From sequence record MH494197.1: a stretch of 64,000 nt of DNA; one strand, 5' to 3'. How positions within the stretch are numbered: the stretch's first letter is position 1; every line of letters starts with the position of its first letter. The notes beneath the pieces are model-generated. The model did no database searches and had not been told where the DNA came from. It saw only the letters and a program-made list of their open reading frames with translations. Positions 1-64,000 of this stretch are shown here, piece after piece. Made by a program: the position numbers and the translations under genes.

Positions 1-456
1 GGCTGTTCCTGTGGTGCTGGTTGTGGAGCATTGTCAGGTTGAGCTTGTGGTGCAGGACGTTGTTGTTCTTCACCTTTATCATCATCACGATAATCATTCA
101 TCAAGTCACGTGCTGCTGCCAAGAGCAGAACCAACATCTTTAGGAGTAAAAGTACGACGACTGTTATTTCCCAGTGTTTTATATCAAGGTTATTTCCTTT
201 GAAGAATTGTGCAACATCAGCATATGGTACTGATGGCTGTGCTTTACCGTATTTGTGACCAACATAGCGTTTAAATTCAGCCCAAAGACGGTTTGCTTCT
301 GCACCAACTTCTTGTGCACCTTGTTCTATGACCACTACCGAAAAAGCCTTTTACTTTTCCTTTTGCACTATCTACTGCACTTTGTGAACGACTATATGGA
401 CGAGCTTCATTTAGCTCTTCATCATTATAGTCTAACATTTCATTAAGTATACTCAT
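1..456 (-). CDS. Hypothetical, probably virion, protein with a Pro/Gln/Ala-rich region; frameshifted and runs off the window edge
   Basis: Starts MSILNEMLDYNDEELNEARPYSRS at an ATG overlapping the upstream stop; continues across frame breaks (EQGAQEVGAEANRLWAEFKRYVG...PAPQAQPDNAPQPAPQEQ). Confidence 0.55.
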
Positions 457-988
457 GTCTCAATCCTTTTACCAAAACCAGCACTCATATATTGAGAGTA
501 TTTATTGTCACTTTTAACTGCTTCAATCGCATCTTTAACTGTGGTTACAGCACGTTCTTCACCAGCTAAATCATGGCTGTCTTCTGGTTTGCCAAAATCA
601 ACACCAATTACTGGTTCGTAATCGTCAAAGTCAATATCATCTTCGAGTTCGGTCATTTCTTGTTGACGTGGTTCATCTTTACTACGTACACGGATTAGAG
701 CTTCAGTCATACTTAGTAGGTTGCCAATTTCATACATTAGTACGTTTGATTGAACACCACGGTGGCATTTGAAATCAAACATCCAAATTTCACCACAATC
801 TAATTCATAAAATCTAGTGGTCTTTCCATGAAAATAGTTTTCTTTAGTGCACCAATATCAAATGCATCATAACGATCCATTAGGCGTTGTGATACTTTAC
901 TTAGTTGCTCATTGGTAGGTTCAACTGCAAACTTGACTCGGTATTCAAAACTGGTTTTATCCGTTAGGATTTGTTGTAATCTATTCAT
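453..988 (-). CDS. Hypothetical late protein (ORFs 800..988 and 453..782 joined across a frameshift)
   Basis: SD GGAG before the ATG, TAAATA upstream at 1014-1019, continuous coding across one frame break. Confidence 0.55.
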
Positions 989-1012
989 TTTAATAACTCC
1001 AGGTCGTTTAAG

Positions 1013-1569
1013 TTATTTATTTCTGTTCATTGCTGCAAGCATTTCATTGCAGGTTTTATGTGCTACCGCCTGTCCTTCGATGGCTGTTGGGTCACCAACT
1101 GATTCAGGTTTCTTAGTTTTAAGGTTTAGATCGATTTCCATCTTATCTTTCTTGGAGTTGAAGATCTACTAATTTAACGTCAGAATCAATGATTTTTGCA
1201 TGAGCATCGAGAGCAATTTTTAACATAGAGTTTGCAGCGTTAATCATTTCTGCTGCAAAACGGTCTTCACAGTTGAAAGCACGGTCGAAAATATCTTCAA
1301 ACTTACGTTCTGCCATCTGTGCTAAACGATCTAATTGAGTTTTTCTTGCTGTAATATCTGGAAGTTCACGCAACTGAACACGCATAGCTTTCAATTTTTC
1401 CATTGCAGCTTTTGCCTCTTCTAGTGAAATTTCAGTTTCACTCTGTTCATCTTCGTCATCCTGATACAAATCCATCTCTGTATCTTCTTCAGGCTCGGCC
1501 TGTCATTTCCATCCATTGTTTAGCACTAGGTAATCCCAGTGCTTCATCTACTTGTTGTTTAGGTTTCAT
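1013..1569 (-). CDS. Helical protein, possible terminase small subunit (gp16-like); frameshifted
   Basis: [50 protein letters not shown] resembles the gp16-type helical core; lies next to the gp4-like gene. Family call is tentative. Confidence 0.35.
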
Positions 1570-2022
1570 TTTTTATATAGATTCCTTTCTGTAATGATTT
1601 TAAATTCCAATCCGGTTATTTTTGCAAAATTCCATTGCATATACCCATTTTGATTGGTTAATCGCAACAGTGATTTTGTCTTTCTTGGATTTAGCCATTT
1701 CCATGTGACATTGTTTGTACGGTTTAACTTCCAGTACTTGAGCATGTTGTTTACCATCTGCACCAATATAAGTAAAAAATCAGGCCAGTACTGATGAACT
1801 GCATTATCAACTGGATTCACGTAAGGAATACTAAATGGTCCACACTCCACTCTATAACCGCAGGGTTGTTGTCTAAAGATATCATGATATCCTTTTCCCA
1901 AGAACTACGGTATATAGGTTGGTTATTACTTTTATACTTTTGTATATTTTTATAGGGAAGATACCTTGAGCCTGTTTGGAGTTAGTAATCTTCGCTGGGT
2001 TAAACTGCTGGTTAAATGCCAT
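1566..2022 (-). CDS. Head completion nuclease (T4 gp4-like, TnsA-N fold); frameshifted
   Basis: Cross-frame reading gives [48 protein letters not shown], the gp4 signature YRSSWE...W..E...IPY....H.Y.PDF. Confidence 0.8.
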
Positions 2023-60697: not shown

Positions 60698-62649
60698 ATT
60701 CTACTCCTTTGTATATAAATTTACCAATATCTTCGATGTATAAACAGATTCCACCTCGATCATTTAACACAAGCCAATCACCAAAACCACAACTGATGTT
60801 GCATATATTAAATTCTTCAATACCATCCGGTGAATACGCAATGAATGGACATATTTCATCTGATATACCATTTACATAGTTATTACATATTAAATCAAAT
60901 GTATGTGAACTATAAGAATTATCAGTACTGAAAATGTGCATTAATGAACTAGATAGAATTACTATTGTTTTTCCCACATTTTTAAAAATCGTTATTCACA
61001 ACAACTACTCCATGTCAGTGTTGTAATGAAATTATATCACCGAATCAAGATATGTCTCATGAGATTCGCATTTCATCCAGATATAAACTACATGCTTCGA
61101 AATTGTTGTCAGCACTTAAACCTAAATCAACCATCAGACCACAATGCGTTCCACAGAATTTCTTTATGTATAGTTTCTTATTGTTTGTACTTAAGTCGTA
61201 TACATATTCATTTTCGAAAATAGTTTTAAATCATTACAAATACTTTTACTATCTTCATTACATCATTATGATACTCATATGGTATTCCATCTAGTTCATC
61301 AATGATAATAGCAAAACCATTGTCATAGTACTTTAGTTTATTGAATGTTTGTATATCCATTTAATATATAATCTCACTTACTTCTATGGTGTAGACACCA
61401 TCATCAGTCATTAATCTAACTGCAACTTTAATATTACTAGACATTCGTGTAACTATCAATCCAATAATTATACCATTCTTTAAAGTACCATTATGGTATC
61501 TAACTTTTACTTCAGTTTTATTATCAATTAAGTATCTTCTAATTATGTGTATTTCCGTTCTAAACAGTTCTAAATAAACTTCACTATACTCCTTATCAGA
61601 ACCATCAGCACAGCTATACAATAAATGTACCTGTTCTAACAAAAGTTTTAAATTCATAAGAACCTCACAGATTTAATATTACTTGTTACATGTTTAAACA
61701 CAGTGTTATCGAACTTGTAAACAATTGTATTAAGTGATTTATGAAAATTAACCTCACACTAATGCCTTGGAACCATTGATTGTACAGACCGTGGATGGTA
61801 AGTTGTTTGCTAATATCTCTTTTCATCTAAACATAGTGAACTAATACAATCATAATAGAGAGGTTCAAGAACTTTTCAGTACTAAGAAAATCGAAAGCAA
61901 GATCATCTATTTGTTTTATGTAATTGAATAAATTTTGATAGTACTCATTCATTGTCAATCCTCTTGAATTTAGCATTATTCGAATAAGTATATGAATGTC
62001 CAAAATCATTTACACCATGCACATTCAATACACCGTCGATGAAATAGATTCGGTCAATGGTGAGTTCACGTTTATAATCCGAATCATCATACCAGCACAG
62101 AACACGAATACCTTTATACTTTGTAGTTAGCTCTTTTCTAATGTAACTAAGTACTCGATATAACTTTTGAATAGCTCTAAGTCCTGCTCAAACATCATTG
62201 TTCCTCGTATAATTCCATGTCATCAACTCCAACTTGGCGAATTGCAGTACTTCTTTTAAATGTACCTTTTTCATATAAACATACAGTTAAACGTATTTCA
62301 CACTTCAATGCACTGTAATAAATCATATCAATAACACCATATGTTTCATACATTTCTAAGTATACATTTCGTCCTAAGTACTTTTCTTCTAAATCAGTAA
62401 TTAGACTATTGATAAGATTACCTATCTGTGTTATATCTGTGTGAAATTTATCCATTACAATAATCCTCTCACATAAAACATTGATGAAAATAGATAATCT
62501 TCAGTACTGGAATTTAGTAGTTTATCAAAACTATAATTTTTATGCTTATTTTCATACAAAGACATTCTATAGTATCGTTCTATATTTTCTAAGTAGTCTT
62601 TTCGTAATAACATCTGTGTTGTTACATTCACTATAATGTACCTTAAAAG

Positions 62650-62676
62650 AAAAAGGGACCAATATATGATCCCTTT
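62650..62676 (-). terminator. Intrinsic terminator after pnk
   Basis: AAAGGGATC...GGTCCCTTTTT. Confidence 0.65.
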
Positions 62677-62679
62677 GTA

Positions 62680-63606
62680 TTAGAAATTTCCTTCAGCCAC
62701 TTGGAAAACTTTCAACCCAAGTAGCTTACGCCACATGAACACAACTTGATTGCGGTCATCATATACCTTTTAACATCGTAATGATCAACCACATTTTTCA
62801 TGTACAGGTCGAATTTGACAACATCATCAGGACGTTTATCATCAATGTCTCGCATAAACAATGCATCGTAAGGAATACCCCAATTCTTAAGCCACTGTTC
62901 GGTATCAGCACGACACCCTTCAGTACGCCCACTCATGACGATAATCTTGCGTTTATGAAAACTGCTTCTGCGATAATAGACAAAATAACTTCTTCGTCTG
63001 GTGTATCCGAGTACAGTACTTTCATCGAACGGGTTACGTCCCCATTTATGAGCAAGAGTACCGTCGATATCAACGATAATAGCAGCTTCTCGTGAATTAC
63101 CATAGTAACCAATGTGTAATGCCTTACTATAATAGTACGTATCTGCCATAGTGTCAATGATATTATCTTGTACTGAACGCTCACGCTGGAGGTTATATTT
63201 CTTACAAAGTTTTACGAACTCTTTAATCTTAAAGAATTCATGAACATCTGCACCACGGTCTTCATTAGGTACAAAATCATCATAGAAGTTCTTTTCTTTG
63301 TAATCATAACCATTATCTATAGCCCATACTTTCCATAGATTACGGAAATGTTGTTTAAGGTTTGTATCGGATATGATGATGTTCCAACCATTCTCTGCTG
63401 CTGAATTTGCTGCACTGAACTGTAAATTAGTTACGTACTGCTCATTAGCATCGTTGAATTTGTAAGCATCATGTGACCCAGCCATAGATTCACGAATATC
63501 ATCACGGTTGATGTTGATAGTCTTGGATTTGGCTTTTTAATCTCTTGCACTGCCCATGTAGTTTTACCACACCGTGCAATCCAACTGTTAGTGTGATAGT
63601 TGGCAT
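62680..63606 (-). CDS. pseT: Polynucleotide 5'-kinase / 3'-phosphatase (T4 PseT-like); frameshifted
   Basis: TVGL.GCGKTT, NRDDIR, IISDTNL; HAD domain VDIDGT, GRNPFD, MSGR, MRDIDDKRPDDVVKFDLY. Confidence 0.92.
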
Positions 63607-64000
63607 CCTTTAATCCTCTAAAAATTTAACATGCTCTATATTATGATAGGTGAGCCATTCCTGTGGTGTTCCTTGCGTATTAAAACACCAATATACGCAA
63701 TACCATTAATTAGACCATTACTATCAGTATTCACATCAACTTTCACAATCTCGGAATCGTACCAGTGTTTGAATGTGTAATCCCAACATCTGACTTTCTT
63801 TCCAATAAGATTGCTCTTGTATTTGTCAATCATTTCATCGACGATAGTTTGTACTGAATTTTTAATTTCATCTTCTACTGACTTTATATATAGTAAATTA
63901 CTTTGTGCATTGTTTATCATTGTATTTCCCAATCCCAAATCGCTTGAGATTTTCACAAGTACAGATTCATCACAACGAATACTAGCAGTATCATTGGATG

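Follow-up and report, generated by a model that had tools for sequence, protein, structure and literature searches.

We analysed a 64,000-nucleotide (nt) stretch of Escherichia phage CMSTMSU (nt 1-64000 of MH494197.1, 386 kb; 100% identity), a Rak2-like jumbo myovirus of the genus Asteriusvirus, for its content of the palindromic hexamer AGTACT. This whole stretch is referred to below as the window. AGTACT is many-fold over-represented at the DNA level, both in the window and in all Rak2-like Enterobacterales jumbo phages sampled, and in the early regions of these genomes it recurs in pairs at fixed positions on promoters. We propose, as a reading that is plausible while still falling somewhat short of probable, that AGTACT is a duplex-DNA site under selection for a symmetric, probably phage-encoded protein, and that it serves both as a promoter operator and as a genome-wide tag.

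An exact search revealed 163 AGTACT sites in the window, in agreement with the approximately 160 counted by eye in an earlier reading of the same letters (the sequence-only reading). Base composition predicts 21.5 sites, close to the 22 of that reading, and dinucleotide-preserving shuffles gave 19.0 ± 4.1, with a maximum of 28; none of 100 shuffles reached 163. The GC content, previously put at about 33%, is 35.2%. Two of the example positions given earlier are exact (3051..3056 and 24020..24025) and a third, 45603, is one base off (45604); no sites start at 8172, 17103 or 62463, where the nearest lie 10 to 40 bases away at 8182, 17123 and 62503. The extended forms that had been described were recovered as well, with 81 occurrences of CAGTACT, 71 of AGTACTG and 36 of CAGTACTG. 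Density was 8 to 13 sites per 4 kb throughout the window.

The genes of the window lie almost all on the minus strand. Because the CMSTMSU assembly is probably affected by many frameshift errors, coding-aware statistics were run on stop-to-stop open reading frame (ORF) segments, and key tests were repeated in better-assembled relatives. By phase on the coding (minus) strand, 52 sites read AGT-ACT, 24 read xAG-TAC-Txx and 56 read xxA-GTA-CTx, and the 14.7 kb outside minus-strand ORFs contained 31 sites versus 4.9 expected. The earlier claim that the motif occupies all three codon phases as well as non-coding DNA was therefore correct. When synonymous codons were shuffled with protein and codon usage fixed, the 132 sites of the coding DNA compared with 29.2 expected (z-score, 20); fixing dinucleotides in addition raised the expectation to 59.6 (z-score, 12.6). 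In both shuffles AGTACT was top or joint-top among all hexamers, tied with the overlapping 6-mer CAGTAC and with GTACTG also near the top. We also employed a strict dicodon model, a first-order codon Markov chain that already contains five of the six bases of AGTACT. Under this model, the phases spanning three codons still held 56 sites versus 32.3 and 24 versus 12.1, and the in-frame dicodon AGT-ACT occurred 52 times versus 9.7 expected. Enrichment thus neither vanished under dicodon-preserving statistics nor left AGTACT an ordinary hexamer, the two outcomes that the sequence-only reading had set against its own proposal. Motif-forming codons write 52% of the Ser-Thr and 51% of the Val-Leu dipeptides in the window. 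CMSTMSU, RaK2, GAP32 and Kaldavass behaved alike, with AGTACT enriched 3- to 9-fold in each codon phase and about 6-fold in non-ORF DNA.

A comparison with related phages had also been suggested. We read 114 kb of CMSTMSU in total and sampled its relatives as 30- to 50-kb stretches. Per 50 kb, we counted 119 AGTACT sites in RaK2 (Alcyoneusvirus), 128 in GAP32 (Mimasvirus), 135 in pEa_SNUABM_12 (Eneladusvirus), 115 in SE_PL and 112 in phAPEC6; per 30 kb, there were 65 in CBB and 98 in Kaldavass (both Mimasvirus) and 192 in Hallingskeid. The excess was common to every Rak2-like Enterobacterales jumbo phage sampled, at 6.5- to 10-fold, and reached 20-fold in the early region of Hallingskeid. This clade is sharply bounded: a tail-sheath search returned about 72 records with at least 80% coverage, 71 of them with at least 60% identity, after which identity fell below 36%. 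The more distant jumbo relatives XacN1 and Atu_ph07 showed no excess or even a reversal (0 and 1 sites, respectively, in 30 kb each), as did the unrelated coliphages PVP-SE1 (0 sites) and T4 (8 sites, at expectation), also in 30 kb each. Two 50-kb stretches of Escherichia coli K-12 (our loci L014 and L015) contained 6 sites per 100 kb versus about 24 expected, an approximately 4-fold under-representation, with GTAC at about 0.7-fold. Phage densities of about 2.5 to 7 sites per kb compare with about 0.06 per kb in the sampled K-12 DNA; at roughly one site per 400 bases, the phage is about 40-fold denser than these host stretches. CMSTMSU carries about 3 sites per kb over the 114 kb read, which extrapolates to about 1,000 or more per genome.

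The sites are spaced more evenly than random. In the window, the coefficient of variation (CV) of the gaps was 0.845, compared to 0.988 ± 0.075 for random placement, and CVs of 0.78 to 0.875 were found in eight of eight loci, compared to 0.985 ± 0.09. Longest gaps were below random in all eight, marginally so for RaK2 and phAPEC6, and no gap exceeded about 2.3 kb in the loci examined. Random placement of 163 sites gives a mean longest internal gap of about 2,200 bp; the longest internal AGTACT-free stretch of the window is 48545..49940 (start-to-start gap, 1,402 bp), and the longest overall is 1..1732 (1,732 bp), at the window edge. Since neutral and compositional processes give Poisson or clustered spacing, this result disfavors them. 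In late and metabolic regions, the dispersed sites showed no fixed short-range phasing, save a coding mod-3 effect. Alignment with phAPEC6 (85% identity) showed 68 of 107 aligned sites intact, versus 44.8 expected from phase-matched hexamers (z-score, 4.55). About one-third of the sites were lost or gained between the two phages, with density unchanged. Such conservation with turnover is typical of many weakly selected sites, as in Chi or uptake sequences. Together with the phase distribution, the enrichment outside ORFs, the shuffles and the conservation across the clade, the spacing and the site conservation support well the selection at the DNA level that had been proposed from the sequence.

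Specificity for the core is sharp. One-mismatch variants of AGTACT were mostly near expectation, including AGTATT and AATACT, which are at expectation; the exception was the half-palindromic pair TGTACT/AGTACA, at about 2-fold. In seven loci, representing five genera and one unclassified member, G preceded the site (position -1) in 6 to 8% of cases and C followed it (position +6) in 3 to 13%, the preferred neighbors being C or A before AGTACT and G or T after it. Weaker outer preferences were a T-rich 5' flank and an A-rich 3' flank. The extended consensus, H-AGTACT-D or TT(C/A)AGTACT(G/T)AA, is itself palindromic. Flank frequencies were reverse-complement symmetric and the two flanks independent, with CAGTACTG found 36 times versus 35 expected from single-flank frequencies.

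Outside the window, AGTACT density doubled or tripled, to 5 to 10 per kb, in regions of small genes that we presume to be immediate-early. These include RaK2 220-230 kb (L016:40000-50000; up to 39 sites per 5 kb), CMSTMSU 130-140 kb (L017:1-10000 = 130001-140000; 34 to 38 per 5 kb) and Hallingskeid 1-30 kb (L135; 6.4 per kb), and they correspond to the region that has been proposed as early in CBB (PMC5259590). In every genus sampled, early-region σ70-type promoters (dozens in all) contain a pair of AGTACT sites roughly 20 bp from each other. Reading downstream, an A-rich tract is followed by an AGTAC that runs into the -35 element (AGTACTTGCAt or AGTACTTGACA), and a single base then separates a second AGTACT from TATAAT; the first site overlaps the -35 at its upstream edge, and the second lies directly against the -10. 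Such promoters read aaaAGTACTTGCAt or TTGACA, a short spacer and then cAGTACT(G/T)TATAAT; they can also be written AGTACTTGCA...AGTACTGTATAAT. Start-to-start distances between sites in early regions showed a sharp peak at 20 to 22 bp (77 pairs), minor peaks at 10 and 40 bp and a weaker rise at 30 to 31 bp; in Hallingskeid, the peaks fell at 20 and 22 bp. We take the 10-, 20-, 30- to 31- and 40-bp distances as helical phasing, which suggests cooperative binding by the predicted protein. RaK2 contains at least 13 exact copies of the 14-mer CAGTACTGTATAAT, and at L016:44700-44800 it has an iteron-like run of five AGTACT sites at 10- and 20-bp steps, within 1.5 kb that carries no annotated gene. 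Other promoter classes of the same genomes lack AGTACT. We found no mention of the AGTACT motif in these phages, or of AGTACT-bearing promoters, in the literature searched; the promoter tables for CBB list other classes, with no AGTACT-bearing promoter among them (PMC5259590).

The dual-site architecture also extends to metagenomic DNA. Viral contigs from IMG/VR (L037, L029, L073, L102, L104, L125 and L133; 5 to 109 kb) contained 3 to 7 AGTACT sites per kb, and some of them carry dual-site promoters. A scan of viral contigs with CAGTACTGTATAAT gave 116 loci, about 21 of which were AGTACT-dense fragments of the clade, the rest being mostly chance single matches. AGTACT density alone therefore flags clade fragments in metagenomes.

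Palindromic, phased and position-fixed sites at the -35 and -10 elements are what a dimeric DNA-binding regulator classically leaves, and they favor the DNA-binding user that the sequence-only reading had listed among its candidates. According to our model, selection keeps AGTACT at high and even density throughout Rak2-like Enterobacterales jumbo genomes. Its reader would be a sequence-specific DNA-binding protein with twofold symmetry, probably encoded by the phage and produced early in the infection. A phage early product seems likelier than a host protein or an activator, because these σ70-type promoters, which are close to consensus, presumably fire when no phage protein is yet present. 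Bound to the paired sites, the protein would cover the -35 and the spacer in competition with RNA polymerase, and the pairs would thus act as operators for the shut-off of early promoters. Through the dispersed single sites, this protein would also be loaded all along the phage chromosome, where it could coat, bridge or mark the DNA. The proposed logic is the same as that of phi29 p6 and SPO1 TF1, abundant phage proteins that coat the phage chromosome and shut off early promoters. The cue is DNA shape for p6 and hydroxymethyluracil for TF1, which tells phage from host DNA; discrimination through AGTACT would rest on a strict hexamer. No homologue of p6 or TF1 came to light, though no search was aimed at one.

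Loaded in this way, AGTACT could act as a sequence "identity tag" of phage DNA, given its roughly 40-fold higher density than in the sampled K-12 stretches. It is conceivable, if rather doubtful, that this density is a barcode by which the phage chromosome is told from that of the host, with the same reader shutting early promoters and coating, bridging or protecting a 350-kb genome. No cytosine-hypermodification genes were found in two members, RaK2 and CBB, and no nucleus-like compartment was seen in the Asteriusvirus Sharanji (PMC11895373). The product of RaK2 ORF290 (L016:31210-31890), in the early region, is a non-specific DNA/RNA endonuclease of the Serratia type (Pfam Endonuclease_NS, E = 8e-37). 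From its sequence it is possibly an enzyme for degrading host DNA, against which the unmodified DNA of the phage itself would have to be protected; a self-marking function is attractive in light of this nuclease, and unproven. If true, the barcode would give large virulent phages a third self/non-self solution, next to hypermodified bases (T4) and the proteinaceous nucleus (Chimalliviridae), and a self-tag of this kind would be a new principle by which viruses label their DNA.

Several points weigh against the operator-and-tag model. The window contains no dual-site promoter, all 163 of its sites being dispersed singles that lie mostly inside ORFs; because of this, we infer the link between promoter sites and dispersed sites. 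Operators are usually confined to regulatory regions and number tens per genome, and the roughly 1,000 genome-wide sites would be unprecedented for a transcription-factor operator. The sharp core specificity looks more like that of a restriction or modification enzyme than that of a typical helix-turn-helix (HTH) regulator. Promoter activity, immediate-early timing and repression are presumed from sequence. The published Nanopore evidence on modification, taken up below, spans two genera, with Asteriusvirus outside (PMC11780129). Finally, a search of early-region ORFs and small regulators for an AGTACT-reading protein identified no reader. The phage sigma-factor gene has one annotated small HTH regulator nearby, the HTH_37 protein CBB_511; it was rejected since it is limited to CBB and GAP32, and the other conserved early proteins could not be assigned to DNA binding with confidence.

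Clustering of early-region ORFs from all genera did yield several conserved small proteins of no assigned function, which we treat as leads only. One is phrog_14550, an 89-amino-acid protein universal in the clade (70 records). Its gene sits among the dual-site AGTACT promoters in the sampled early loci, within 2 to 5 kb of the left genome end (in CBB, inside the terminal repeat); its structure prediction was unusable, with a predicted local distance difference test (pLDDT) score of 45. A second is a conserved early coiled-coil protein (RaK2 230247-230744, L024:3258-3755, and homologues) with a sub-threshold match to the H-NS N-terminal domain. Its small C-terminal domain consists of a beta-hairpin and a helix and contains an invariant G-N pair; the protein is annotated as "DNA-binding protein" in K64-1. 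A model with a pLDDT of 75 gave no significant structural match, and no sequence match was found in PDB; on its sequence features, it is possibly a phage H-NS-like protein. In phage 121Q, a ParE-like toxin-domain protein (L076:7498-7752, E = 3e-10) conserved in three genera is followed by a 73-amino-acid protein (L076:7803-8021) with a weak, sub-threshold winged-helix (linker histone) match.

Alternatively, AGTACT could be an enzymatic processing site needed at regular intervals, for example, where a topoisomerase prefers to cleave, where nicks or recombination events concentrate or where a primase starts. A phage type II topoisomerase cutting A^GTAC^T would give a 4-base stagger, and from the CTG template in AGTACTG a primase would make the primer AGUACU; the G at +6 does create CTG on both strands in Asteriusvirus and Alcyoneusvirus loci and in Kaldavass. 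The palindrome would be usable in either orientation, and even spacing without gaps above about 2.3 kb fits one site per Okazaki-fragment-sized or topological unit. However, the sequences that topoisomerases and primases are known to prefer are short or degenerate. We rejected a gyrase site in particular, as the published E. coli motif is a long (130-bp), degenerate pattern rather than a hexamer (PMC6379681). Moreover, the Nanopore study of two clade phages reported no nick-associated motif (PMC11780129), and the fixed pairs around the -35 and -10 are left unexplained. We consider an enzymatic role of this kind unlikely.

A second alternative, and one of the users that the sequence-only reading had considered, is that AGTACT is the target of a modification or restriction-modification-like system and is abundant through repair bias or modification-linked selection, as proposed for HIP1. 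The core is a classical type IIP palindrome, the ScaI hexamer, with enzyme-like sharp specificity; several DNA methyltransferases are encoded by clade members, and RaK2 DNA reportedly withstands many restriction enzymes (PMC3622015). Avoidance of such sites is the norm in phages, though, as seen in PVP-SE1, XacN1 and Atu_ph07 (0 to 1 per 30 kb), whereas here the hexamer is enriched 6.5- to 20-fold and apparently unmodified. Native-versus-amplified Nanopore sequencing of Kaldavass and Hallingskeid, both AGTACT-rich, detected only GATC, CCWGG and TGCAT, and Kaldavass has three predicted methyltransferases for these three motifs (PMC11780129). Among the matches listed, the GAP32_152-type N4/N6 methyltransferase occurs only in Mimasvirus and Eneladusvirus (18 records with at least 80% identity) and has no match in Asteriusvirus or Alcyoneusvirus. 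This enzyme, the one candidate methyltransferase profiled across the clade, whose gene adjoins the nucleotidyltransferase gene, was therefore rejected as the driver. It is weakly similar to YhdJ-type adenine methyltransferases, a resemblance that, on sequence, would fit the unexplained TGCAT motif better than AGTACT. The expected frequencies of AGTATT and AATACT argue against a depletion signature of the very short patch (VSP) type, and the paired promoter positions are again unexplained. A modification target is disfavored by these data, and we hold it to be distinctly unlikely.

In a third alternative, the reader is a recruited Enterobacterales host protein, for example, a nucleoid-associated factor or one of the nucleoid-occlusion type that blocks division. 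Consistent with this, enrichment is confined to Enterobacterales phages and absent in the Xanthomonas and Agrobacterium relatives, and Sharanji infection leads to filamentation with no known division inhibitor (PMC11895373). SlmA, a dimeric HTH protein, recognizes palindromic sites (GTGAGTACTCAC) with a central AGTACT (PMC3020112). However, SlmA needs the 12-bp palindrome GTRAGYRCTYAC, with G1, T2, purine-3, A4 and G5 (PMC3020112), and the flanks of the phage sites are neutral or opposite to this requirement, with G at -1 being the rarest base. Full SlmA sites numbered 0 to 1 per locus among 65 to 163 AGTACT cores, a count to be set against a chance expectation, for that many cores, of only about 0.1 per locus; SlmA sites were rejected as an explanation. 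The unrelated coliphages T4 and PVP-SE1 lack the enrichment, and a repressor already bound to early promoters would hinder the first transcription. A host reader is improbable in our judgment.

A signal acting in RNA, with AGUACU serving in processing, decay or translation, would fit the facts that nearly all of the DNA is transcribed and that density is highest in early genes. Yet the flanks are reverse-complement symmetric, fixed sites lie in non-transcribed promoter spacers and upstream of the -35, and enrichment is equal outside ORFs, which makes an RNA signal very unlikely. That AGTACT is a functionless by-product of codon, dipeptide, compositional or neutral mutational bias is suggested by little besides a codon usage in the window that favors GTA, AGT, ACT and TAC, and can be dismissed almost entirely, as the excess survives four null models preserving protein, codon, dinucleotide and dicodon content, extends to non-ORF DNA and comes with under-dispersed spacing and conservation above phase-matched background.

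Among known systems, the phenomenon belongs with the over-represented functional oligomers, namely, HIP1, Chi and uptake sequences. Like members of this class, AGTACT is a k-mer outlier, is independent of frame (in four genera) and keeps its density across relatives with turnover. HIP1 (GCGATCGC) of cyanobacteria, found roughly once per 0.3 to 1 kb, is likewise a short perfect palindrome in many-fold excess genome-wide, in all frames and in non-coding DNA; related genomes retain it, and no agreed reader or function is known for it. HIP1 belongs, however, to cellular genomes and includes methylated CGATCG/GATC sites (PMC6604393), whereas AGTACT is carried by a phage clade, has no modification reported at the site and occupies fixed promoter positions. 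With Chi, FtsK-orienting polar sequences (KOPS) and uptake sequences, AGTACT shares a density maintained by weak selection on many sites, turnover and a large self/foreign contrast. Those sequences are, in contrast, asymmetric, strand- or orientation-biased and 8 to 12 nt long; AGTACT is a 6-bp palindrome, is 10-fold denser and has no known cognate machinery, and being its own reverse complement with symmetric flanks, it lacks the polarity of Chi and KOPS. What sets AGTACT apart is that the carrier is a clade of virulent phages, that a 6-bp palindrome reaches up to one per 130 bp and that it doubles as a paired site embedded in core promoters. Rak2-like jumbo phages are common on coli, Klebsiella and plant pathogens and are under consideration for therapy and biocontrol. 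AGTACT offers a concrete and cheap handle on how a 350-kb genome is organized and protected and how its expression is timed.

The 163 dispersed sites of the window span 1733..63020. They are exact 6-bp matches without strand, the site being its own reverse complement, and start at 1733, 1787, 2505, 3051, 3174, 3314, 3681, 3990, 4203, 4748, 5227, 5485, 5584, 5623, 6130, 6652, 7609, 8102, 8182, 8414, 9749, 9867, 10134, 10453, 10728, 11960, 12510, 12680, 12713, 12932, 13061, 13115, 13874, 13915, 14466, 15718, 16847, 17123, 17219, 17257, 17998, 18122, 19237, 19681, 20237, 20444, 20930, 21260, 21614, 21990, 22337, 22877, 23169, 23346, 23411, 24020, 24236, 24700, 25043, 25533, 25674, 25918, 26883, 27549, 27733, 27921, 27998, 28256, 28567, 28914, 29578, 30507, 30534, 31573, 31677, 31995, 32258, 32546, 32582, 32657, 33029, 33209, 34360, 34552, 34822, 34888, 35265, 35988, 36459, 36676, 37546, 37677, 38288, 38451, 38590, 39090, 39122, 39442, 40127, 40416, 41533, 41572, 41589, 41856, 42007, 42372, 42684, 43589, 43679, 43806, 45066, 45128, 45604, 45789, 45907, 46185, 47047, 47105, 47390, 48402, 48539, 49941, 50151, 50341, 50654, 51085, 51568, 52346, 52484, 53628, 53939, 54776, 54810, 54831, 54921, 55456, 55771, 55938, 56161, 56326, 56384, 56888, 57512, 57772, 57895, 57939, 58307, 58581, 58953, 59700, 60071, 60335, 60576, 60588, 60924, 61327, 61878, 61940, 62150, 62246, 62377, 62503 and 63015. 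Mobile HNH genes contained 9 sites in 5.2 kb versus about 12.5 expected from local density; this is no clear deficit, and we rejected the idea that these genes are motif-free islands.

Frameshifts in the assembly are suspected because single genes are split in CMSTMSU and intact in relatives, and because the record carries the UNVERIFIED_ORG flag. In the window, the genes for tRNA nucleotidyltransferase, NrdD (the large subunit of anaerobic ribonucleotide reductase), a PhoH-like ATPase and ClpP are annotated as 2 to 4 consecutive fragments, the fragmented stretches being 12958-14679, 37628-38929, 44570-46010 and 52669-53363. The CMSTMSU gene (184524-185349) for the phage-encoded σ70-family (RpoD-like) sigma factor is also split into pieces; this factor is conserved in the clade (85 records; RaK2 L016:10368-11264).

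A second repeated promoter class was observed in which the -35 and the spacer form a terminator-like hairpin (aaaagggTTGACTtcggtcagcccttttgcTATAAT). It occurs in CMSTMSU 130001-180000 (L017) near positions 32683, 35367, 39818, 42848 and 46424 of that locus and in RaK2 (L016) near 30243, 31900 and 37321. By its sequence, this class looks like a combined terminator-promoter unit between early and middle genes.

Some hexamers were depleted within the ORFs of the window. TAAATA occurred 9 times versus 27 to 32 expected and TATTTA 3 times versus 28 to 32, which fits avoidance of the T4-type late-promoter-like ATAAATA. Homopolymers were depleted in ORFs as well (AAAAAA, 6 versus 49 to 66; TTTTTT, 2 versus 19 to 26), which could mean either that slippage is truly avoided or that homopolymers were misread in sequencing. 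Avoided palindromes were seen in the window and in loci L003, L004 and L007: CAGCTG was absent from the window versus 8.3 expected, GATATC and CTATAG occurred 2 times versus 17 in GAP32, and GTTAAC occurred 3 times versus 17 in RaK2. Palindrome avoidance beside the AGTACT excess suggests ordinary restriction avoidance. On the plus strand of the window, the complement of E. coli Chi (CCACCAGC) was found four times and Chi once, with about 0.2 to 0.3 expected for each. Chi is thus mainly on the coding (minus) strand, which may simply reflect GCT-GGT-GG codon usage.

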